The notes beneath the pieces are model-generated. The model was not told where the DNA came from. It worked only from the letters and a program-made list of their open reading frames with translations, and made no database searches. From assembly GCA_907165135.1 (NCBI GenBank), contig OU015566.1, positions 9,362,001 to 9,426,000 on the forward strand: a stretch of DNA of 64,000 nucleotides. The letters are read 5' to 3'. This document shows positions 1 through 43,716 of this stretch, one piece after another; the first letter of the stretch is position 1; every line of letters starts with the position of its first letter. The DNA comes from Oikopleura dioica (Eukaryota; Animalia; Chordata). Both the position numbers and the translations under genes were made by a program.

Positions 1-1643
1 TTTTCTTTTGGAAAATAAATAACGAGAATCATCATTTTTGTAAAAAAAACCTTTCCAGGTTCTCTTTGAAGTGATCATCAATTCTTCGATAAGAACTCTG
101 TCCTGTCTGTTCCCGCTTACAATTACACTGTCTTCAAAGAGCGCGTCGGGTTCAAATCTCAAGTGCAAGTGCCGCACCCCTCGGTGTCAAATCATTATGT
201 CCTCGGCCATATGGCATCTCCGCGAATGGTGGTGGTGTGACCATGGCGCTGTCAGATCAAGCGCGGCGCGCAAACTGTACTTGGCCACAGTTTTTGACAT
301 TTGACAAAAGCCCGCTTGACAGAAACCCTTCTAATAATTCTGGATCGATTATTCCAGCCACTCCTAATTCACACCTTTCGGTAATTCGATTACGCTTTCA
401 AAGGATGTGCAGCGTTTGGGCACACTTAGATCTGTCACATGGTAATTTTAGTGCCCAATTCATATCGCAAGGCGTGACAATTGAATATTGAAAAGAGCGA
501 ATATAAAATAATCGGACAAGAGCCGATTAGATACGACTAAATAATTTAAAGAATTTCTCGACCTACAGTATGCAAATGTTAGTACGATTTCATCGATAGA
601 ATGGTTGTAAAAATTTTAGCAACGCTGCTTAATCAGCTTCGAAAACGATGCATTCTAAGATCTAATCCAGTGGAATAACTGTTTGGCTGCCCTGGTAGTT
701 TGGCAGTGGCGATCCAGGTAGTCCGTAAACCGTGTCATCGTAAAGGGGTCCGATTCCTGCTTCACTGAACCAAAGACCGGTGATCCACTCGGATCCAAAT
801 TGCCGGCCCTACGCCCATTACGTCTACTAGAGTTCGTATTAGAACCACTCTATACAGTATCAAAAATTAAATGACATTTTGTCCTTAGTAAGAACTTCTG
901 ACTAAGACTTCGGCTGTAAAAAAAGAACAAAAAATACCCCATTCCTTCCAACCTTATTTTTACGATTTTCACGAGCTCGGTGGACGAGTAAGGAGACAGT
1001 TACAAAAAGAAAATGTTAACCAGTCTTAAGAGCTTATGATTTTCAACGACAAGGTAGTTTTTTTCTCATCGTTCTTTTTCAGAACTCCGCTCAGCCCCGT
1101 AATAGTCCTTCACTGTCACCCGATCTTCTTTAGAAGACACGATCGTCAGTGACCAACACAGGACGGAGATTTCCTCGTTCGCTTATGTTTCCAGGCGATC
1201 TTAGTCGGGAAACAAGAAATCTCGCCTTCCTGGACCCTTCAGACTGGCTAGTACTGCAATCGCCGTGTACTTTGATGCTGAAAGCCTCTCTATTCATAAA
1301 AAATAGAGATATATTCAGCGAAATATAAAACCACTCACCAGCTGGACACGCTGCCGAGCGAACGAAAATTAATGAATCTAAAATGGCGAAAGAGAAGCTA
1401 TTTGTCATGATTCACGGTGCGATTTCGACTGTTCGAAATAATGACCAAATCATTTTTAAAAGCTATTCTTTTTACGATATCATCTCATGTTCTGCTTCGT
1501 CGTCAGAACCTTTTCGACCGGCGTTTTTTCGCTTATCACGTGACTAGATTCAGCAGGATGTGCTGGCTTTATTCGCCTATCGAGGGGATAGTTTTGATAG
1601 ACCCTTTGATGACCAGTGCAACAATTTTGATGGGACACAATCA

Positions 1644-2618
1644 CTAGCCAGTTTGCGCACGGTGCACTCTACGGCCGACCCCTACTCTGGGTGTCGAGAA
1701 TGAACCTTCTCCCTTGTGGAGGATGAGAATCTGGTCAATACCTGGTTGAGGAGAAGAAACTGACTGGTTTTCGCTGCCCGAAGGCGTCAGATCACTGGAA
1801 GAACCCGTTGAGTTGTCGGCCTTTTTCGCGTTTTCAGAAGAAGATCCACAGTTTCGTTTGTGCTTAAAATAAAGATTCAAGCCAAATCTTTTTGACCGAT
1901 TCTTACTGCTAGAAACTCAGCAAGTTCCGAAATGTAAAAACAGCCATTGCATGATCCACAGACGATTTTATCTTTTCCGATCGTCATCGACGGTTGAAGG
2001 CTTGTTTGTACTGGTGCTCCAGAACTGGTTCTAAATAGTTATAACTTGTAGGGTTATTTTATTACTCTACAGAAAAGTCAGTAATTTCATAGAATTTCTG
2101 GAACAAACATTCATTTATATGAAGAAATTACGATCGCCATCAGGCGGATATGAATAAGCTGACTCTGTGACAGTCGAAAATGACGCTTACAGAATTAAAC
2201 AACCATAAAATTTCTACATTTACTGTATTTACCCGGATTTCGGTAGTGCCACCATCGACAGCATTCGGGTTAAATCTTCGTCCGAACCAGATTTTTCGAA
2301 TTCTGAAATTCACGATAAGCAACTGTTCCCGAAATCATTCAACTCTTCCTCCTACCACACAAAAACTTTCTCTCATGACTTTCTCGGTGCTCCGCCAGAT
2401 TCATAAACCCACTTGTTTCTCCGCGCTCTTTATCAACAAGCGAGGAGAGCGCTAGAATCTTTAGAGAGAAATTGTGATTTCAGAATACGAAACTTTTGTC
2501 AACTGCAAGTTCAGAGGGGAGAGATTTTTTTTGTTTCCAGCTCGACGAGGTCATTGTTTGCGGATATTGCGGCTACAAAAAGCGACAATGAAGCGCAAAC
2601 ACCGCTCTTGGCGGCCAT
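1644..2618 (-). CDS. Hypothetical multi-exon gene containing a BCL11/ZNF296-type CCHC zinc-finger motif
   Basis: Removing a 44-nt GT-AG intron (1906-1863) joins IVCGSCNGCFYISELAEFLA to HKRNC, matching the CxxC...(F)...HK(R)xC pattern of the BCL11 N-terminal CCHC finger. Further open exons with GT/AG borders lie at ~2230-2620. Gene ends are not resolved. Confidence 0.35.
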
Positions 2619-5518
2619 GGTCAGACTCTGGCAAACAGAGCTCTAGGCACGCGGACAGTTCAATTCTTATGAGGGCTACAATTCTCATTTGAACATGTGT
2701 CCGTCAGACAATGGGTCACTGTGGAACGGCTTTTAAACGTGCAAAAGTCAAATTAAAAAGTTCTTTCAAGGAACTACAATTCTAGTCAACGCTGGAAATA
2801 CCTGTTTTTATTTGGAAATGCTTCTTATCTCTGGCTTTCTGATGGGGAAAAACGTTGATACGGGAAAATTATAATGATTATTTGTTGTTTAATGTTTTGT
2901 TTGTTTAATATGTATTCTGTGAAAGATTATTAAACATTGACCCTTCGTGAAGTCCAGAAGAAGATAGCCGCTCGGAGGAGGCGCCCTCGTTGCGAAACAT
3001 CGGCGATTCGACCTAATTTCGCCGCGCGAGCGCCACCTTGTTGGGTCCAGTAATGGGCCCAGTTCACCTGTTAGTTCTTGAATCATTTCACTATCATTTG
3101 GTAACACCGACAAAATTCACCATTATTACTCATATTCTAAAGTAAGGAATAGGCTCATTCATGTATTTTAAAGTTCCCAAATAAGACTATCTCTCTAAGG
3201 AAAGTTCCAGTTTCTAAGAAAAGTTTTTTCGAAAAAAAGACTTTTTCTGGGTGAGGATTAAACGTCATGAAAGTAGTTTAGCGTTTATCTCTATCATTTG
3301 AATATGAATTTTCTGATGATAATCCCTAATTATTTCGACTATAAAAATGCTGTTTCATGAGACGAGCTATTTTCTCCCATGAATAATAAATAAATCAGTC
3401 AAAAAGGAAAATTTATTCTTGCAAAAAATCCTGAAAGAAACAAATCCACTGTAAAATCGCAAGAGTGGACTCTAGCAGAAGACAGCTGCCCTCTCCAGCT
3501 AGATGGCCAGCTCAAATTTCAACCGAACGCCAAGGTGACACTGCTCTTTATATAAGGAGCGCTTGATTCGGTACTAAGTCACTTCTATCTCGCTGGCCAA
3601 GTTTTAAAGATAGATTTATGACATTAGGCTCGATGTGCACCGATGAGCGTCCCGGTTGAAAATTATGGGGGACGAAGATCGAAAAATTTCTTTCTGCGAT
3701 TTGATCCCCGTGAGCCGTTCGGATTTCAAGTCAGCTGAAAGGAATCAAGAAACAGTCCCAAAGCAGAAGCCCCTGCGAGGTCAATCGGCCACTTTAGGGA
3801 TCTACCAGCCCAGCTGGACAACAAAAACACCGCTCTCGCGAAAATCCGCGTAATTATGTATTTCACTGACGCCAGAGCTTATGCGCATGATTCGGGCGTA
3901 AATTGTAGAGTTAAGTATTTTCGGTTATTTTCTTTCATAAGAAATCGGTTGGTTTGGGCATAATGGTTGGGTAATTGAGCTTCAGGGTAAGGGTTGCTGA
4001 TGGATTCTTCAAAAAGACATAAATATTTAACATAAATCCGCATTTTTCTTGTAATATAACGGTATGTTAGCAGCTCATCAAGCCCTACCATAAAACATGT
4101 CATTTGCCGGCCAGAAGTTAAACAATTTTCTTGCGAAACTGAGATTTATTCTAACCGGCGATGTAACTTGAATGTCAAAATCAAAAAAACTGTTCCATCT
4201 TGTAATTATAAATTGTAAGCTAAAATTACATCTTCAGAAGTGTAAAGAATGATTCAAATTTTGTGTGGAATAAACGCCAGAATCGTAATGCTAGAAAAAT
4301 GGATTTCTAAAGAGCTAGTGGGATAGTTGTTCGAGTGATCCGACTGGCAAATCGTGCTTAGCCTGTCCAGCTGGCCGCTGAAAGCCGAAAATTAGGTGAA
4401 ATTCACGCCAACTCAAGCGGGTACGTACCGCCGGCATCAGAGTGCCGCTGACATTTCAATCTCTTCACCTTGGATTATTTTGCACGGGTCGGCACGTCAA
4501 ACTCCACAAACGTGAGGCAATCTTTTCACGTCTTCCCTCACAAAAATTTAAGAAAAAATGACCTCAAAAGTTTCCAAAGATAAAATTCTTGAGTGGTATA
4601 AATTCTTACCGCTGATTCTTCGAAAAATAGGTTTCTTCAAAACCCGTTTTTTAAAACTTCTCGACTGAGCTTCATCCATCTATCTATCTTGGTTTCTTTT
4701 TTTATCAATGGCCGAATCGACAGGATTTTCTGTTCTTTTGTGCTCGCTGTCGACATGGGCCGGTCTGAAAGTAGCCGATGTCGCAACACCAGACGTCTCC
4801 TCCCTTTAAAATGCCCTATTCCGCGCCATATTCATGTATATTTAGCGCCAACAATATTTTTTACATTTTGATCTCTTGAAATTGGCAAAAGGGGACTCAA
4901 GATTGAGTCACTAACTCGCGGCGGAATGGGCGACAGTTTCATGTCTACAGTCGGTAACCCGTTGCTTTAATTGAAGACTTATGATCACAATACTTTTGTC
5001 GATAACCCTTAGTTGATTTGGGTTCAGTTGAGTTCACTGTGTTCAAGCAACGACTTGAGCTCGCCAACGAAAATGAGCTTATTTTCTGACTATTTGTTTA
5101 TATTCTTCGAAATCACTGTAATGGTTGCCGTATAGCCATCGACATCCGGAGTCAGTAAGCTTCAATATCTCGTATCAACTCAGATAAACGAACCAGGCTG
5201 GCCTTCAGATAAAAACTCAACATCGACAGTGACAAATTTCCGTTTCGAAATAGAAATGACTGTTGATGGACGTTTTAATTGATATTGCGAGACTCAAAGC
5301 AAATGGAAAAACTTTCCATTTATTCCTATTCTTTGGACCATGAAGCATAATCCGGTAGTGAACCGACTTAGAAAAATCTAGATCTCACATTAGCAGATTT
5401 TGAAATTGAAAAAGACTTGCGCAAAATTATAAAAATTATAATCATGAGACAAATAATCCGGAAAATGATAGATTCAGAAAGAGAATGTCTGAATTGACGA
5501 AAATCTATTGAAACGGGC

Positions 5519-18141: not shown

Positions 18142-18296
18142 GGGGTTTCCTTACATGGTACAAATCCTTACATGGTACATTTCCTTACATGGTACAAAAT
18201 CCTTACATGGTACAAAAATCAAATTGTACCATGTAAGGAATTGTACCAGGTAAGGATTTGTACCATGTAAGGATCTGTACCATGTAAGGAAACCCC
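18142..18296. mobile_element. 155-bp foldback MITE built from 4+4 tandem copies of tccttacatggtaca
   Basis: Near-perfect palindrome ggggtttcc...ggaaacccc, flanked by the direct repeat aaatttac (8 bp, or caaatttacg, 10 bp, if the TIR starts at ggg). Confidence 0.9.
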
Positions 18297-24196: not shown

Positions 24197-27100
24197 ATGG
24201 GTGCAAAGAAATCTAAATTGAGCAAGAAGAAAATCGAAGACCTCAGTAACAAAACTAAATGTAAGAAAAGAGATAGTATAACCCAATAATATACTGGATA
24301 TTATTTGTAACTATACGCGATAATCATCTTTTCCGATTAAATCATTAATAAATACGCTTAACAGAAGAGATTCGCTAAATATGGATGGCAGCCCAATGAC
24401 ATGAACAGCGTGCTCTTTCTGTTACTAGATGGGCAACGCATGAAATGTCATTGAGCCAATTACAGGGCGTCAGAATAATTTCACGTCTCCTGAGTTTCTG
24501 TAATGAATCCAATAAAATGTTCAGTCACCGCTGCAGAAATCAAAAGCTGGTATTCTGGATTCCTCAAAGATTGTCCAAGTGGTCAGCTGAGTAAGGAAAG
24601 GTCAATCATTTGTTGAGACGAATTTATAAATAATTTTTGTTCCGAAATCAACGAAGACTGAGGATTTGATCTTTTTAAGGCTGAATTTACCGCAATTTAT
24701 CGACAGTTCTTCCCAAGTGGCGACTCTGGCACTTTCTCAAAGTAGGCTCATATTGTTTTAAGGCTTAATATAGATTTATATGGTCTCATAACAGGCAATA
24801 AATCATATGTTGCTCTAATTATATATGCGTCCTTGTGGTCACCTTTTGATAATTTCGCCTGAGAGGATCTGAACTTAATTGCAAAAAACATCAAAAATGA
24901 TATCGACTCGCTTCAATAAAAGCAGCCAAGGATTGACGTCTGAAAGCTATGATCGAAGTTGTTGAAGCCGGGATTGAAGTTGATGAAGCCGGGACTGACT
25001 GTGGAGAAGCCAATAAAAACAGTTTTATCGTCAATCATTGATTGACAATCAATCTAAATTAATTCGCATCGCCGTTAGCCAAAGGCGACTATTTTGTTTA
25101 TAATAGGATGATAAAAGGTATATCAATAGAGCCAGCATAAATATGCAGAAAAAACTGCACAAGAAAATGTCTTTTTTACTAAAATAAATTTATCAAAGAA
25201 GAGTTCCTAATTAGCAAAGGAAGATTTTTTGCATTCCTAGAGCGCGCTGCTCCTTAGCGCCCCCACAAGGCCGACCCTCAAGTCAATTTTTCCCCTGCTT
25301 CGAGATGTTACGTCATTCCGAGTAATAACCACACCGCAGGCTCAAGTGAAAGTGCGCCTGAATTTTTAGCGCACCGCCCCGCGAGTGAAATCGCAACGGT
25401 ATATGGCAGCTCCCGTTTCGCCCAAAATCCCGGATCGCCCACATCCCGGATCGCCCATTTTCCTTGATCGCCCATTGTGGGCAAAACGGGAAAATGTGCG
25501 GATCAGGAAAATGTGTGATTCAGGATTGGGCAGAACGGGATTTACAAAATTAGAAAAGGAGATTTTTATCCCTGAGTTTTATATCATTTCTTCTTTTCTT
25601 TTTTCAAATTTAATCATAACTCGGTCAAATCTACTTTGGGATGTCCGATTTCTAGGTAAACTTGATGAAAAATGAGCTCTTTTTTGAGCTTTCAACATAG
25701 AGAGTTTAATACATTTTTAGAATCCCCAGAAGCTGGGGATCATTTTGACTATTGATACTTGGGGCTTTGGTTCATGCCCTGAGGCGTTTTAGGCCTTCTA
25801 AAGTCCAAAAAATCCTGCAATCTCGGTGAAATGGCCATAATTTTTGTTCCCCCACTTTCTGATGATGCTCAGCATCTCAACTTGTAGCTGGGGTTCTGAC
25901 GGTTCAGAATCTGTGTAGAAATCTACCGGACACCCCCCCCCATTCTGGCGCTCCTAGAAGCTCTAGAAGTTAGGGAAGTTCACCGAAAATCGGTACTTTT
26001 CAACTGAAATGTTGTAAAAGGTGTAAATTTTTGTCCGAAATCGATCAAAACTCGATAAAATCGGCTTTCTGATGTCCAAAATATAGTTACAAGGCATCAG
26101 AAGTCACTTCAAGTCAAATTATGTGCAAAAAATTTCGTAAAAACTCACCCGAAGTACTCGATAATGACCCAAATATATTTTTGAGGTCACAAAAACGATT
26201 TTATTATTCCTAGATCGTTTTTGTACAGAAATATATCTGTTTTACCATATTTTAGTAAAAAGTACCGATTTTCGGTGGACTTCCCTAACTTCTAGAGCTT
26301 CTAGGAGCGCCAGAATGGGGTTGTCCGGTAGTTTTCTACACAGAATGACACTGAACCGTCAGAACCCCAGCTACAAGTTGAGATGCTGAGCATCATCAGA
26401 AAGAGGAGAACAAAAGTTATGGCCATTTCACCGAGATTGCAGGATTTTGGACTTTGGAAGGCCTAAAACGCCTCAGGGCATGAACCAAACCCCCAAGTAT
26501 CAATAGTCAAAATGGTCCCCAGCTTCTGGGGATTCTAAAAATGTATTAAACTCTCTATATTGAAAGCTCAAAAAGAGCTCATTTTTCATCAAGTTTACCT
26601 ACCGATTTCCAAAGCCGTCGGTTTTATTTTCGCAGGGATTAGCACGCGCAAGTATGAGATTCAACCCTTTTTGGAGGTGACAAATTGGAGGAGTAAAGAG
26701 GAGTTTTTGCAGCAGTTTCTAGTTAGAATTTCTAAACCACCTTCTTCCATTATCAAATTTCAAATTTACAATTGCAAATCCTGGTTTGCACACAAATCCC
26801 GTTCCGCACATTTTCCCGTTTTGCCCACAATGGGCGATCAAGGAAAATGGGCGATCCGGGATGTGGGCGATCCGGGATTTTGGGCAAAACAGGCGCTGCC
26901 AATATATATTTCCTATGAACAAGGTCTAATATATAATATAAGCAATAAAAGAACCTGTCTATTTCGATTGAGGTCGATAAAAGCCCATAAGTCTTAAGAA
27001 AAATATAATTCGTTGTAACTTGTGATTCTGTTTAGTCTGGTCTTTAACCTCTTCGATGCAAATGGAGATGGAACGATAGAGTTTGAAGAGTTTCTTACGG

Positions 27101-34349: not shown

Positions 34350-34609
34350 ACAGGTTCTGGCCTTACCATACGGGCTTTCCCTTTCTTCTGCTTCTGCCCA
34401 TTGTGCTGCACAGGTGGTACTTCAGGCTCTAATCGACTCTGCTGATTCGCAACGCTCATTCCTGAGAACAACAAAACTTGACACATTTCGACATACAATT
34501 TTCAATATTGAACGGTTTTGAAGAGGGCTTTTTAATTTTGACTTTGTCAGGCAGCATAAGATGATAACTGAACTAGTTTCAATTTTGAACAGACAGGAAA
34601 GTAATTAGG

Positions 34610-37466
34610 TTACAGCGGAGGCGGCCTACTGTTATTAGATCCGCCATTGAGGATCATGCGCTGCGTCTTCTCGTACCAGACGGGATGCTTGCGTTGGATT
34701 TTCTCGACAATGCTGAGCAAAGAGTCGCACGTGTCGCGGATGGAGTAGTTCCACACTGTCTCTTGACTTTCGTGTTCAAATCGGATGTACTCGTCTACTT
34801 GATCCAACTCGGCTCTGAATAACAATTCGCTGTTTTTTGAATCTGCCAAAAATTTGAAAAAAAAGACTTTTTGGCCGAGGGAGAGACTTGATCTTCGATT
34901 TGACTTACGACAATCGCTTCTCAAGAATCATGTTAGCAACAAGCTGCTCCGCCTGGCGGCAAGGAATGCCAAGAAGTCTTCCCAGATCTTGAAAGCATAA
35001 CGATTTGTAGTGAAGTGAAATCGCGAAGATGTTGTGTTCCTTCATCGCTTTTTCGATCAACGTCCATCCTTCTGGTGTCATTTGTTGGTAGTGTTTTTCT
35101 TTGAGAATTGAGGAAAATACTTGTACTTCTTTCTCGCTGATAATTTGTTGCTTGTAGACCTTTTCGAGGAGACCGAAAGTGAGCATTTTTGGAGCGCGAA
35201 TATCTGAATTTTTAAGAAAATGATGAAATGCAAGCTTAAGAATCTACCTTTATATATCGCGCAAATGAGGCGCGTTCGATTCTTTCCAGCTGGAGAAAGA
35301 ATCGCACAATTAATCGCTTTCAATAAGCACTAGTCGCAAAATAGATTAGTTTTAGTCATGTTATCATATGTTACTTTTGCTCGTTCTTCGTCGGCGACAA
35401 TATTCAAGTCTAACGAAAGTTGAAAGTATTTCTGCGAAGCATCGAGGAATTTCTGCTTGTAGTCGAGGATTCTAGCGTGGCTCAATTGGTACAATAGCTT
35501 GTCACCAGCGCTCGCTTCTTGTAAAAATGCTAAAAATGAGGGTTGAAAAGCTACTATTTGGTCAACAAGAGCAACCTGTAGCTCGATTTAAAGCAAGTTC
35601 TGCTTTTGTTGGGTCGTTTACTGACTCCATCAAATAGAGCTTCACAATTCTGAGGTAAACTCCCAGTCGATTGATTGTCAGAAACATGTCGCTTCCGATC
35701 GTCATTGCGGTTGAATTGGCAGTCACCGAAATCGAGTTGAGAATATCCGCCGTTTTTTCGAATTCGCCGTTATTTTCGTAAAGATCCGCCAGAGTCATTT
35801 TCAAATTATTGACTATTCGATTTGGTAATGATGATTTCCATTTGTAAAAATTACCGTGTTGCTCGAAGGAAAGATTTCGTGCTTGAAGGCATTCGAGTGC
35901 GACTTCGCAGAATGATCGCTTGTTCTCGTCGCTAGAAAATGGATTCGATGGGGGAATGAGGCTCAATGCATACTTCAAAGGTTGAATATCGTCGCTCAAT
36001 TGATCCAAAAACTGTCTAGCGAAAATTTGCGACCGGTTCTCGTCAGTAAGCGCGGTTAGCGTCGTCCTAACAGGGTGGAACATTCGGCCGGGCAAACTCG
36101 GGCAAATTGGTCGGCGCCGGGCAACGGCGGGCAAACGGCCGGCGCGAGGGTCATATTTTGGGTAAAAAACGGGCAACTTCGGGCAGTCGGGCAAAGTCGG
36201 CGCCCGAAAAAGGCACCATCGGCCGGGAAAAACGGCGCCCGGAAAAAGTTGGCGGGCGGGCAAAAAAGTCGGCGGGCCAACCAGGGAAGCACTAATACTA
36301 ACATTTTCAATCCCAGAGTTCGAAATCTATGGGAGTAAAATTGGGAGCTTCCAAAGGGAGCTCCCTTTTTTGGGAGCACGGAGGGAGCAGGAGCACAGGT
36401 TTTCAGGGCTGGGAGTAAATTGGGAGCTCCCCAAATAATAATAATTATTAGCTTAATAATTATTAATTATGATACCGTGATTGCTCAGATTTTTATTAGA
36501 AGAGACGTTTTTTTTATTAGATTTATTTTTAAATGTCTCTTCTGAAATTTGATATCAATAAATAGCCTAAAATTGACCTAAATTTGGTTATGTAATTTTA
36601 ATAAGAAAATATTGAAGTCATTCACGAAATTCGCCTATTTGGCATTATGCCTATTTATACTTTCTTTATCATTGCTATATAATAACCATACAACGATGGT
36701 TTTGCTACTTAGACTTTACTTAATAAAATTAAAAACTTTCGAAAATTTTTGAAATTTGAAAAAGGGAGCAAAATTGGGAGCTCCCAAAGGGAGCTCCCTT
36801 TTGGGAGCAGGGAGGGAGCAGGAGCACGGGTTTTTACGAGGGAGCTCCCTTTTTCAGGGTGAGGGAGCAGGGAGGGAGCGGGAGCACGGATTTTCTACCA
36901 GATTTCGAACTCTGTTCAATCCACTACTCTCGATTATTGTTAATTATTATTAAGGGACTTTCCTTTTTATGGTCGACATGTTTGTCATACGGTGAAATTA
37001 TCCTCCTTTTTATAAAGAATGACTTTCTACTGCCTAACCGGGCTCATATCACGAAATTTTTACATTCACTCATTTCTTAGTCGAGTAAATCGGCGTCCTA
37101 ATTTTGTCCATAAAATATCGGCGCCGGAATTATTGTTGGCGGCCGGGCAGAAATCGGCGCCGGAGTAAAGTCGGGCAAAAATCGGCGCCGGACAAAAATC
37201 GGGCAGAAATCTGCGCCGGGCAAAGCCGGGCGTCCGAAATTTCGCCGGTTTTTCCCGGCGCCGATGAAAATTTCCGGGCATCGGCGGGCAATCGGCCGGC
37301 CAGACCCAAAATTTTTGCCCGAATGTTCCACCCTGGTCCTAAGCGCTTGAATTGGCGATTCCGGATCATTTATAATTGCGTTTGTCCAAATTCTATAATC
37401 AGGTGGAGCATCGGCTGTCCAGGAAGCTCGGATTAGCTCGTCAATTCGACTGGGATTTTGGCTCAT
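34610..37466 (-). CDS. COPS4: COP9 signalosome subunit 4, interrupted in exon 1/2 by a transposon
   Basis: QALR|TTLTALTDENRSQIFARQFL, HARILDYKQKFLDASQKY, KAINCAILSPAGKNRTRLI, IEKAMKEHNIFAIS, DQVDEYIRFE..WNYSIRDTC..VEKI all match CSN4/PCI domain segments. Confidence 0.9.
36071..37335. mobile_element. Non-autonomous TIR element with 7-bp TSD inside COPS4 coding sequence
   Basis: gtcctaa|cagggtggaacattcgg ... ccgaatgttccaccctg|gtcctaa. Many subterminal (c/t)cgggcaaa and cggcgccg repeats. Confidence 0.92.
36314..36914. mobile_element. Nested hAT-like element (8-bp TSD)
   Basis: ttcaatcc|cagagttcgaaatct ... agatttcgaactctg|ttcaatcc. Internal gggagc(a/t) repeats. Confidence 0.92.
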
Positions 37467-38510
37467 ATTCGAAAACTCGTCGATAACTCGGGATGAAAGT
37501 ACAGTACCAGTGTTTCTTAAAAGAGATTGCTTGTATTTACTGCTTTTACTGTAAAAATGCATATTCTGAAGGGACAGAAGGAGAAGAGCATGAGAAAGCG
37601 ATGCGTTTCGCCTTCTTTATCGAAGACCGAATAGAACTGAGGAGACTAATTGACGCATGAGATTTGAAGTGTTGAGAAAGTTGGGCCGATAAAGATTGAA
37701 ACCGGGGCTCCCAAGAATAAAAGAGCACCGGCAAAAGCGTATATAAATCGAGAGGTTCGAAGCGTCAGATTGAGATTCATCCAAAACAGAGAAACACACG
37801 CGGATTTTCAAATTTACATCGCCATTTATAACTTCGTAAAAATGAAGAAATACACTCAACGAATAAAGTTAAATGATAATTAAATACTTAATTCAAGCTT
37901 AATTTAAGACAATTTCTCTACACTAAAATTGAGCAGAAGAAAGTCAAGTCCTTTGCCTCAGAAAAGGAGAAAGTTTGCGGAGTTGTCCATCTCACAATTT
38001 CCCATTGGCCAAATCTTCAGCGAGTGACTCAGAAGAGTGCACTCATTTGCCCCTAGAGAAATCATTTTTGCCTATTTTTCAGACTTTCAATTTTTTTGCA
38101 TTTTTACAAATTACGCAAATCTCAATTCTACAAATTCCAAGGCAGTAGACAGAGAATCACGTGACGCGTCAGGAACGCAAGGCCACCTCGTAATTTATCA
38201 TTTGCGCAAACATACCATTTTTATCATTATTTCAAAAAATTCGAATTCCAAATTTCTTTTTATCTAAAACTTTGCTTCCGAAAAACTGATTTCGGAAAAA
38301 GTTCAAAATCTGGACAACCTTTGCGTGCTCGCGGCGAAATGTCACCTCCTCGTTTCATCCCTTATTTTATTCTAGCGTTCAATCAATTTTCAGTATAATC
38401 AGTGTTTATAGTATAAACTTTATACTGTTGTCTGAACGAAGATAATAAAAAGGGATGAACCAATGTGGGGACATTTTGCTATTGACCAATTGATAGCTGT
38501 GCTGGGCTCG

Positions 38511-41600: not shown

Positions 41601-41709
41601 AGTAACAATGACGCAAAGCTTGCAAATGGCCCCGCACCCTAACTGTGCAAACACAAAGACAGAGAGAGTTGATCAAAATCGCGTCATTGTGAAAATGATA
41701 GCCTACTAC

Positions 41710-43091
41710 CAGGGGTGACCATTTGGGCATTGGGCATTTGGGCAAATCGGGCAATTTTCGGGCAAAAACGGTTGAATCTTCCAACCTTTCGGGATCCCGA
41801 ATGTTTCGGGATTTCCCGAAACATTCGCAGTGAAAATGAGCCTTTTTGTCTTCGAACCTTTCGGGGATGATTTTCAATGATTTCTGTCCGAGAAAATATT
41901 TAAAGCAAAATAGTAACGTCTACGTACATCTTTACTGAAGCAAATGAAGGCGCGAACGAAAAAAATAATTTACACGAATTTTTGGATTTATAACTCATGA
42001 AACTCTCTATAAGACAGGCGCGGAGCGCATACATTCTCTTTGACTGCGAATTCACAATTGAAACAAGGTATGGCCTTCTTAGACCATCGAATTTGACGAA
42101 GGCAGCTAGAGATATCTTTTTGATAAGTAAAATGCCCGAATTCGGCATTTATACCACTTTTTTATAACGTAATCCTCAACTAATTTCCCGAATGATTCGG
42201 GCGATCCCGAAAGGTTCGGGAATTCCCGAAAGATTCGGGAGTAATCCCGAAAGATTCGGGAAATCCCGAAACATTCGGGATCCCGAAAGGTTGGAAGTGA
42301 CGACCGGCAAAAACGCTTTTGGGCGGGCATTTGGTCGGCTCAACGCCTGAAAATAGGCTGGGCAACATTGGAAAAGTCGGGCATTTGGGCATTTCTGGGC
42401 AGTTGGGCACCATCGGGCAGTTGGGCAAATGCCCACCGTGGAAAATCATGAACGTGGGCGTTTTCCTGTCCGCTTATTAGTCGTTAAGCTCACAAACAAG
42501 AAAAAAGATATAAGGAGAAGGTTCTGCAAGGGTGTGTGAAGTGGACCTCTATGGTTAGCTGTCTACCTTTGACCTCTTGATCCTTTTGTGAAATTGTCCC
42601 TACCCTTAACTCAGCCCCTTCTTTGCGGAGATGGTTCTGCAAGGGTGTGTGAAGTGGACCTTCATGGTTAGCTGTCTACCCTTGACCTCCAGATCCTTTT
42701 TATCCCTCATTTTTCCAACCCCATTTTTGCACCCCTTTTTTCGAGACGGTTATGCAAGAGTGTGTGAAGTGGACCTTAATGGTTAGCTATCTATTCTTGA
42801 CAACCTGATCGATCTTTTACAAAATTATTTTTTAACCGCTTTTTAAATATATTTCAAACCTTCCAAATCTTAAACTGGGATAAATTATTGAGAGAAATTT
42901 AAAAAATTAAAGTTTTAACAAGCACGAAATGTTGGGAAAATTTTTGCCCGAAAAATTGCCCAATTGCCCGATTGGGCATTCTAGGCACATTGGACTGGTC
43001 GGGCATTTGGTCGGCCCGGGTCTTGATTTTTGCTATTGGGCGGGCAATTGGTCGGCCCGACGATAATTTTTTGCCCAAATGGTCACCCCTG
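41710..43091. mobile_element. hAT-like non-autonomous element (8-bp TSD, CAGGGG termini)
   Basis: cctactac|caggggtgaccatttgggca ... gcccaaatggtcacccctg|cctactac. Arrays of gggca and ttcgggatcccgaa motifs. Confidence 0.92.
42520..42810. repeat. Three tandem ~114-bp repeats inside the hAT-like element
   Basis: ggtt(c/a)tgcaag(g/a)gtgtgtgaagtggacc...atggttagct(g/a)tcta..ttgac starting at ~42520, 42633 and 42748. Confidence 0.85.
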
Positions 43092-43716
43092 CCTACTACA
43101 GCTCATAAAAATGACGATTACACTGTTTTAGTGATGACCAAAGCAAAAAAGGAGATGATAAATTTAAAAAAAGGAATGAAACATTAAAGATATTTTATAT
43201 CTTCCATTCTAAAAGTTATCGAGTAGAACATTGAACAACGCAAGGAACTTGACATCAACAAAAAATCTGACAACACAGAGCCTCACCATATCTACAACTC
43301 GGATATCCATATTGAAAGCCCTTTGAAACTTTCACTTGTTATTTCTCTCTGAAATATATTGTCTGAAGTATTTGATCGCAATTTCGTAGAACAGAAATCT
43401 GCGGGAAATTTCGGCATTTCCGGCATTCGCTTGATCCGGTACTACTTCTTTGGAGTATTTTTGTAAGAAGTTTATTTAATATTTTTTTATTTTTTTGCGA
43501 AAGTTGAATGGGGCGAAATACGGAGATAAGTTGATGTTCAGTACTACTGAACTTCAGTAGAGCTGAGAGGAATTAATGGGAGGCAATAGGATCGGAGTCA
43601 AACCTATTAACAGACTTTTTAACAAAGTAAATGGTTCATTAATTGACTGTGATTGAACTTGAAGAGATTCCGAAGATGAGTGGTAAGAGATTGGGTGAGC
43701 TTTGGTACTGACTTAA

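Follow-up and report, generated by a model that had tools for sequence, protein, structure and literature searches.

On the assembled haplotype of Oikopleura dioica, the first coding exon of CSN4 (COP9 signalosome subunit 4) is disrupted by a very young, polymorphic insertion of a composite, non-autonomous hAT-like transposon, and we regard the result as probably an ordinary disruptive allele. A preliminary description of this DNA had put the insertion forward as a candidate case of intron birth, the duplicated target supplying a frame-restoring GA-AG intron. Judging from the sequence, we lean toward a negative verdict on that interpretation. All positions given below are those of the window, i.e., the whole stretch of 64,000 nucleotides that was analysed.

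Identity and Exon Structure of the Interrupted Gene

The gene lies on the minus strand, where it begins with an ATG at 37466 and ends with a stop codon at 34610-34612. In a Pfam search, a PCI domain was found at 1.4e-9 in the last large exon of the gene, while the PSMD12/CSN4_N signals were weak (E 7e-4 and 5e-3) and below the curated cut-off. When the PCI exon was compared with solved PDB chains, CSN4 was matched with an E of 3e-14 and Rpn5/PSMD12 with an E of 0.02-0.2. Since the CSN4 chains were matched far better, sequence comparison identifies the gene as CSN4 and not as the paralogous lid subunit Rpn5/PSMD12; the identity originally given to it (COPS4/CSN4) thus holds, through both the PCI domain and the best PDB matches. 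The sole close relative of the PCI exon was found in a 736-bp metagenome contig, which ends short of the insertion site. The parts of the gene are as follows.

37343..37466, minus strand: first portion of CSN4 exon 1, ahead of the insertion (MSQNPS...PIQAL with base 1 of the split Arg codon region)
35855..36063, minus strand: second portion of CSN4 exon 1, beyond the insertion (TTLTALTDENRSQ...SFEQH)
34610..35812, minus strand: CSN4 exons 2-6, with GT-AG introns of 42-46 and 94 nt between them; PCI exon at 34909-35203

Apart from the insertion, the gene has five introns, all of them GT-AG, of 42, 46, 45, 44 and 94 nt. Introns as short as these are in keeping with O. dioica as the source of the DNA. 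The first of these (35813-35854, 42 nt) is a multiple of three in length and free of stops, so that a transcript keeping it would encode 14 extra residues without a change of frame; homologues can be aligned only to the form that lacks it.

The Inserted Element and the Reading Frame

The outer element measures 1265 bp (36071-37335) and lies wholly within the first coding exon. Its ends are 17-nt terminal inverted repeats (TIRs), CAGGGTGGAACATTCGG, which are 100% complementary and have no further occurrence in the window (0.09 chance matches expected). On either side stands a perfect 7-bp target-site duplication (TSD), GTCCTAA on the plus strand and TTAGGAC on the gene strand. Both the TIR element and the TSD are therefore as they had been described at the outset, in sequence and in position, and the perfection of the two argues that the event was recent.

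37336..37342, minus strand: TSD copy nearer the 5' end of the gene, TTAGGAC; contains the proposed AG/GA donor (here and below, the slash marks a proposed cut)
36064..36070, minus strand: TSD copy on the 3' side of the gene; contains the proposed TTAG/ acceptor
36071..37335, unstranded: outer non-autonomous TIR element, 1265 bp; GC-rich arms, 15 CGGGCA repeats, ORFs without a Pfam domain
37319..37335, unstranded: TIR at the gene-strand 5' end of the element, CAGGGTGGAACATTCGG
36071..36087, unstranded: TIR at the gene-strand 3' end of the element; accounts for the greater part of the pyrimidine-rich tract ahead of the proposed acceptor

Deletion of the element together with one TSD copy leaves a single open reading frame, ...PIQALRTTLTALTDENRSQIFARQFL.... 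The protein modeled from this empty form has 437 residues, and we aligned it with 61 full-length homologues from a representative search. The insertion site falls inside an aligned block, and across it the restored protein shows no gap of its own relative to the 61 homologues, which bears out the gap-free fit to CSN4 given at first. In an unspliced transcript, the frame would pass at Arg43 into the element and meet a stop at 37098-37100, giving a truncated protein. An exact look-up of this read-through ORF in protein records found no entry, a search with the 233-aa ORF downstream of the insertion, limited to a length range that leaves out the full 437-aa protein, gave no match, and an Rfam search over 35500-38000 gave nothing near the thresholds.

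The Empty Site in Other DNA

Reads were mapped from two DNA runs (X1 and X3, belonging to two studies and carrying two organism labels) and from two bulk oligo-dT RNA runs (X15 and X16). Contigs of both DNA runs join 36063 to 37336; precisely the 1272 bases in between are skipped, and 7 letters at the joint can be assigned to either side. Such a joint represents the empty site, where TTAGGAC stands only once and which the preliminary description had suggested looking for in other haplotypes. In X3, depth was 52.7 in the contig with the empty joint and about 111-114 in the flank contigs, and positions 37506, 37512 and 37533, candidates for linked variants, were at half depth; in X1, the joint lay in a 1093-letter contig with a depth of 55.9, against 61-69 for the flanks. 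The left flank contig ended exactly at 36070 in both runs. An 8-bp TSD was also considered for this copy, but was rejected because it matches in no register and because 1272 bases (1265 + 7) are skipped at the empty joint.

The presence of the empty site in two runs, in one of them at about half the depth of the flanks, means that the insertion is polymorphic and probably heterozygous. To go by the depths and the contig ends, X3 probably carries both alleles in about equal share. Two consequences follow for the interpretation of the filled allele. If the insertion is heterozygous, the intact allele can cover for the filled one; and with an intact allele in existence, it can no longer be argued that this haplotype has to supply a working copy of an essential gene. 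Moreover, with the empty allele present as DNA, the conserved frame across the site needs no splicing as its explanation.

We also considered whether the insertion might be an artefact of assembly, i.e., a copy of a repeat misplaced into the CSN4 exon. The family is multi-copy (see below) and, across the joint, the contigs of two runs show the empty form, as a misplacement would have it. Yet the 7-bp duplication is perfect, and it doubles a target that is single in the empty allele, which is the signature of real transposition; furthermore, the flank contigs of both DNA runs break exactly at 36070/36071, where the element begins. An artefact is hence highly improbable, and we take the insertion to be real, recent and polymorphic.

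The RNA runs contributed little. X15 and X16 (RNA-seq from 2026) bear the same species label as the best-matching DNA run. Over 34400-38000 they yielded 6 and 3 reads, respectively, which were 90-95% alike, fitted only in part, and included none over exon 1. Reads so few and so dissimilar indicate that the RNA came from a diverged lineage, and it is uninformative about splicing. In the metatranscriptome runs X10 and X11, 5-7% of words were present. A single species label evidently covers deeply diverged lineages, and RNA runs need to be chosen by lineage rather than by species name.

Composite Structure and Family of the Element

The CSN4 element is a composite, a point on which the preliminary description was silent. 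Nested within it is a hAT-like miniature element of 601 bp, with a perfect 15-nt TIR and its own TSD of 8 bp, located at 36306-36313 and 36915-36922.

36314..36914, unstranded: nested inner element, 601 bp, hAT-like miniature; TIR CAGAGTTCGAAATCT, 8-bp TSD TTCAATCC, joint 36305 to 36915 in other DNA

DNA contigs of other runs join 36305 directly to 36915, with 609 bases skipped and 8 letters fitting both sides, so copies of the outer element that lack the inner one occur in other DNA. The two arms of the outer element that remain are 243 and 421 bp long, with 60% and 47% G+C (41% in the window), and carry 15 CGGGCA short repeats in total. The ORFs of the outer element returned no Pfam domain. 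One contig of X3 joins 36116 to 37287, skipping 1170 bases; it represents an arms-only, internally deleted derivative of the outer element located elsewhere in that genome.

In the DNA runs, read depth over the element was 150-3900, as compared to 55-70 over the flanks. Depths so far above those of the flanks imply that the family is multi-copy, with the inner element present in tens of copies. When metagenome contigs were scanned for the TIR plus subterminal bases, no copy of the family was found, and a scan for the 19-mer composed of exon plus duplication gave two matches, both due to chance and with unrelated flanks.

The type of the inverted repeats and the existence of related elements in the window point to membership of the outer element, which is non-autonomous, in the hAT superfamily. 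Its terminus (CAGGGTGG..., 17 nt, perfect) belongs to the (C/T)AG type and is accompanied by short subterminal repeats, which fits hAT, and 16 of the 20 outermost bases agree with those of the element at 41710. A TSD of 8 bp is typical of hAT, and this length is seen in the nested element and in the element at 41710-43091, but not in the CSN4 copy, where the TSD is 7 bp. The TSDs of those two elements are unrelated in sequence to that of the CSN4 copy.

The related element occupies 41702-43099 with its duplications; the element proper (41710-43091, 1382 bp) is non-autonomous and has a perfect 20-nt TIR, CAGGGGTGACCATTTGGGCA, an 8-bp TSD, CCTACTAC, and GGGCA-type subterminal repeats like those of the CSN4 element. 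It too is composite, containing an inverted pair of 59 nt (41769-41827 and 42248-42306, 90% complementary) with TCCCGAA-type repeats and, by eye, what appear to be three tandem units at about 42510-42790. The DNA around it has no adjoining ORF of at least 90 aa.

Two further elements were seen in the window. At 25653-26601 there is an element of 949 bp with a perfect 32-nt TIR (TAGGTAAACTTGATGAAAAA...) and an 8-bp TSD, CCGATTTC; once it is removed, two plus-strand frames of 154 and 117 codons continue through the joint, the peptides of which look low-complexity. A miniature element of 155 bp, at 18142-18296, has a perfect 21-nt TIR (GGGGTTTCCTTACATGGTAC) and an 8-bp TSD, AAATTTAC; across its empty site, no frame of at least 90 codons is open.

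Could the Filled Allele Be Spliced?

The intron-birth interpretation supposes that the spliceosome removes the element plus one TSD copy exactly, cutting at AG/GA and TTAG/G, in which case the filled allele would make normal CSN4 mRNA and be near neutral. Owing to the TSD, exact removal could occur in any of eight registers, just one of which ends in AG; this register starts with GA.

36067..37338, minus strand: candidate GA...AG intron, 1272 nt; the sole exact-removal register ending in AG

It is the very register that had been proposed (37338..36067, 1272 nt), and at the sequence level it stands: both splice sites would derive from the TSD, the frame would be kept, and the conserved protein would be unchanged.

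In O. dioica, 11-12% of introns are non-canonical, many of them GA-AG, and they are enriched among new or lineage-specific introns (PMC8008620, PMC4122922). GA-AG is the main non-canonical class, and its GA donors share an AG upstream and an A at +3 (PMC7072748). The putative donor in CSN4, TTAG/GACCAG, does have the AG upstream, but its +3 position is C rather than A, and positions +3 to +6 (CCAG) do not match the donor consensus. The putative acceptor, CCACCCTGTTAG/G, is a reasonable one and, as in the GA-AG class, it has a pyrimidine-rich stretch ahead (GTTCCACCCTGTTAG/GAC).

Other features of the site also tell against exact splicing. A canonical GT, absent from the preliminary description, lies only 7 nt inside the element (CAGG/GTGGAA, 37331); if it were used with the same acceptor, 7 nt would be added, and the frame would shift and run into stops. 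The candidate intron, at 1272 nt, would be far longer than the other five introns of the gene (42-94 nt). The predicted fold of the pre-mRNA is ambiguous in this respect. The TIRs and subterminal arms are predicted to pair over about 45 bp, in a stem that would bury the splice signals by covering all donor positions from +4 and the sequence that precedes the acceptor, yet would draw the two sites together.

That one register should offer a GA-AG pair is most likely due to chance. A G?-AG register comes with 2.3% of the 7-mers in this CDS, and with about 8% at equal base use; with a whole genome looked through and a 2-8% chance per insertion, such cases are expected to turn up by chance. Given also that an empty allele exists, selection need not have kept the filled allele working. 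Taken together, the sequence features make exact GA-AG splicing of the element unlikely, and intron birth as an explanation of the locus rather unlikely too.

Rescue of the filled allele might instead be imprecise, the use of cryptic sites yielding an in-frame protein that differs slightly from the normal one, or else a mix of products mostly out of frame and degraded. In maize, Ds and Mu are familiar examples of transposons that are spliced from exons partially and imprecisely. Around the two junctions of CSN4, there are 432 G?-AG pairs, and with 145 of them the frame is kept and no stop arises, which also means that "frame-restoring" registers are easy to find. Among them are the GG-AG option adding 2 residues, which had already been listed and does exist, the GT at 37305 with the same acceptor (+11 residues) and the GT at 37331 with the AG at 36039 (-7). 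On this point the initial figures need revision: the nearest GT-AG options were said to delete about 9 residues or insert about 37, while those that actually keep the frame delete 6-7 or add 11. The site, for its part, falls in a stretch that is gap-free across the 61 homologues, where changes in length may not be tolerated. Imprecise rescue accordingly strikes us as distinctly improbable.

The course of events that we favor is a simple one. A composite, non-autonomous hAT-like transposon would have inserted into the first coding exon of CSN4, duplicating TTAGGAC. Transcripts of the filled allele would remain unspliced at this point, so that the frame would enter the element and stop there, yielding a truncated CSN4. 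Most likely, then, the filled allele is a loss-of-function or strongly weakened one, carried with or beside an intact empty-site allele, and the AG/GA...TTAG/G register of its duplicated target is a coincidence.

Relation to Known Systems

The disruptive allele that we favor has its nearest counterparts among polymorphic hAT insertions in exons, such as those of maize Ac/Ds. These likewise have short TIRs starting with CAGGG, subterminal repeats and a perfect TSD, the element contains no transposase, and an empty allele is found in the population. They differ in the TSD, typically of 8 bp as opposed to the 7 bp of the CSN4 copy.

The intron-birth interpretation, for its part, has good precedents. 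In an old model, a transposon that inserts into an AG/G(T) site is flanked by ready-made splice sites, and Oikopleura is listed among the species with indirect evidence for it (PMC3443670). The CSN4 locus resembles this protosplice-site scheme, based on AGGT duplication, in that the TSD would provide the 3' border (...AG/) as well as the 5' border (/G...), with exact removal. The model, however, needs AG/GT, whereas the CSN4 TSD offers AG/GA and would rely on the tolerance of O. dioica for GA.

Introners, which operate as a genome-scale process in protists and algae (PMC11282704), offer a second comparison. Those of Micromonas and dinoflagellates (Huff et al. 2016, Gozashti et al. 2022; PMC11282704) are, like the CSN4 element, non-autonomous and multi-copy, have TIRs and a TSD, and lie within coding sequence; in both cases, the TSD could be the source of one splice site or of both. 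On the other hand, many introner copies have been shown to be spliced, while the CSN4 element is one exonic copy known from DNA alone, far longer, composite and with a GA donor. Our search of the literature for an introner family in O. dioica found no paper showing one.

Within the same animal class, the introns of Fritillaria borealis are for the most part non-canonical and carry inverted repeats and duplications, according to the accounts of Henriet et al. 2019 in PMC11282704 and in PMC13326754. As portrayed there, these MITE-derived introns share with the CSN4 insertion the inverted repeats and duplications at the borders, together with a relaxed spliceosome. They differ from it in being mostly AG-AC or AG-AT, fixed, numerous and shown in RNA, as against a candidate GA-AG pair that is polymorphic and seen in DNA only.

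Implications

The origins of new spliceosomal introns in animals are still poorly documented. Well-established cases of transposon-born introns come from algae, dinoflagellates and Fritillaria, and none of them is an allele still segregating in an animal amenable to laboratory crosses. An insertion segregating in an essential chordate housekeeping gene and removed exactly at a GA-AG pair built by its own TSD would amount to an intron observed in the act of arising, in a population that also retains the allele without it. From the sequence, we consider it quite unlikely that CSN4 presents such a case.

The locus is a good test case nonetheless, because both alleles exist: if the filled CSN4 allele were spliced exactly, the two would be available side by side for a direct test. 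It also carries a caution, in that "frame-restoring" registers at target duplications arise by chance. Should the allele turn out to be an intron at birth after all, it would point, together with other exonic insertions, to an active introner-like process in an animal. If it is not spliced, which we judge to be the likelier outcome, the CSN4 insertion would be one more young deleterious insertion in a gene-dense and highly polymorphic genome.
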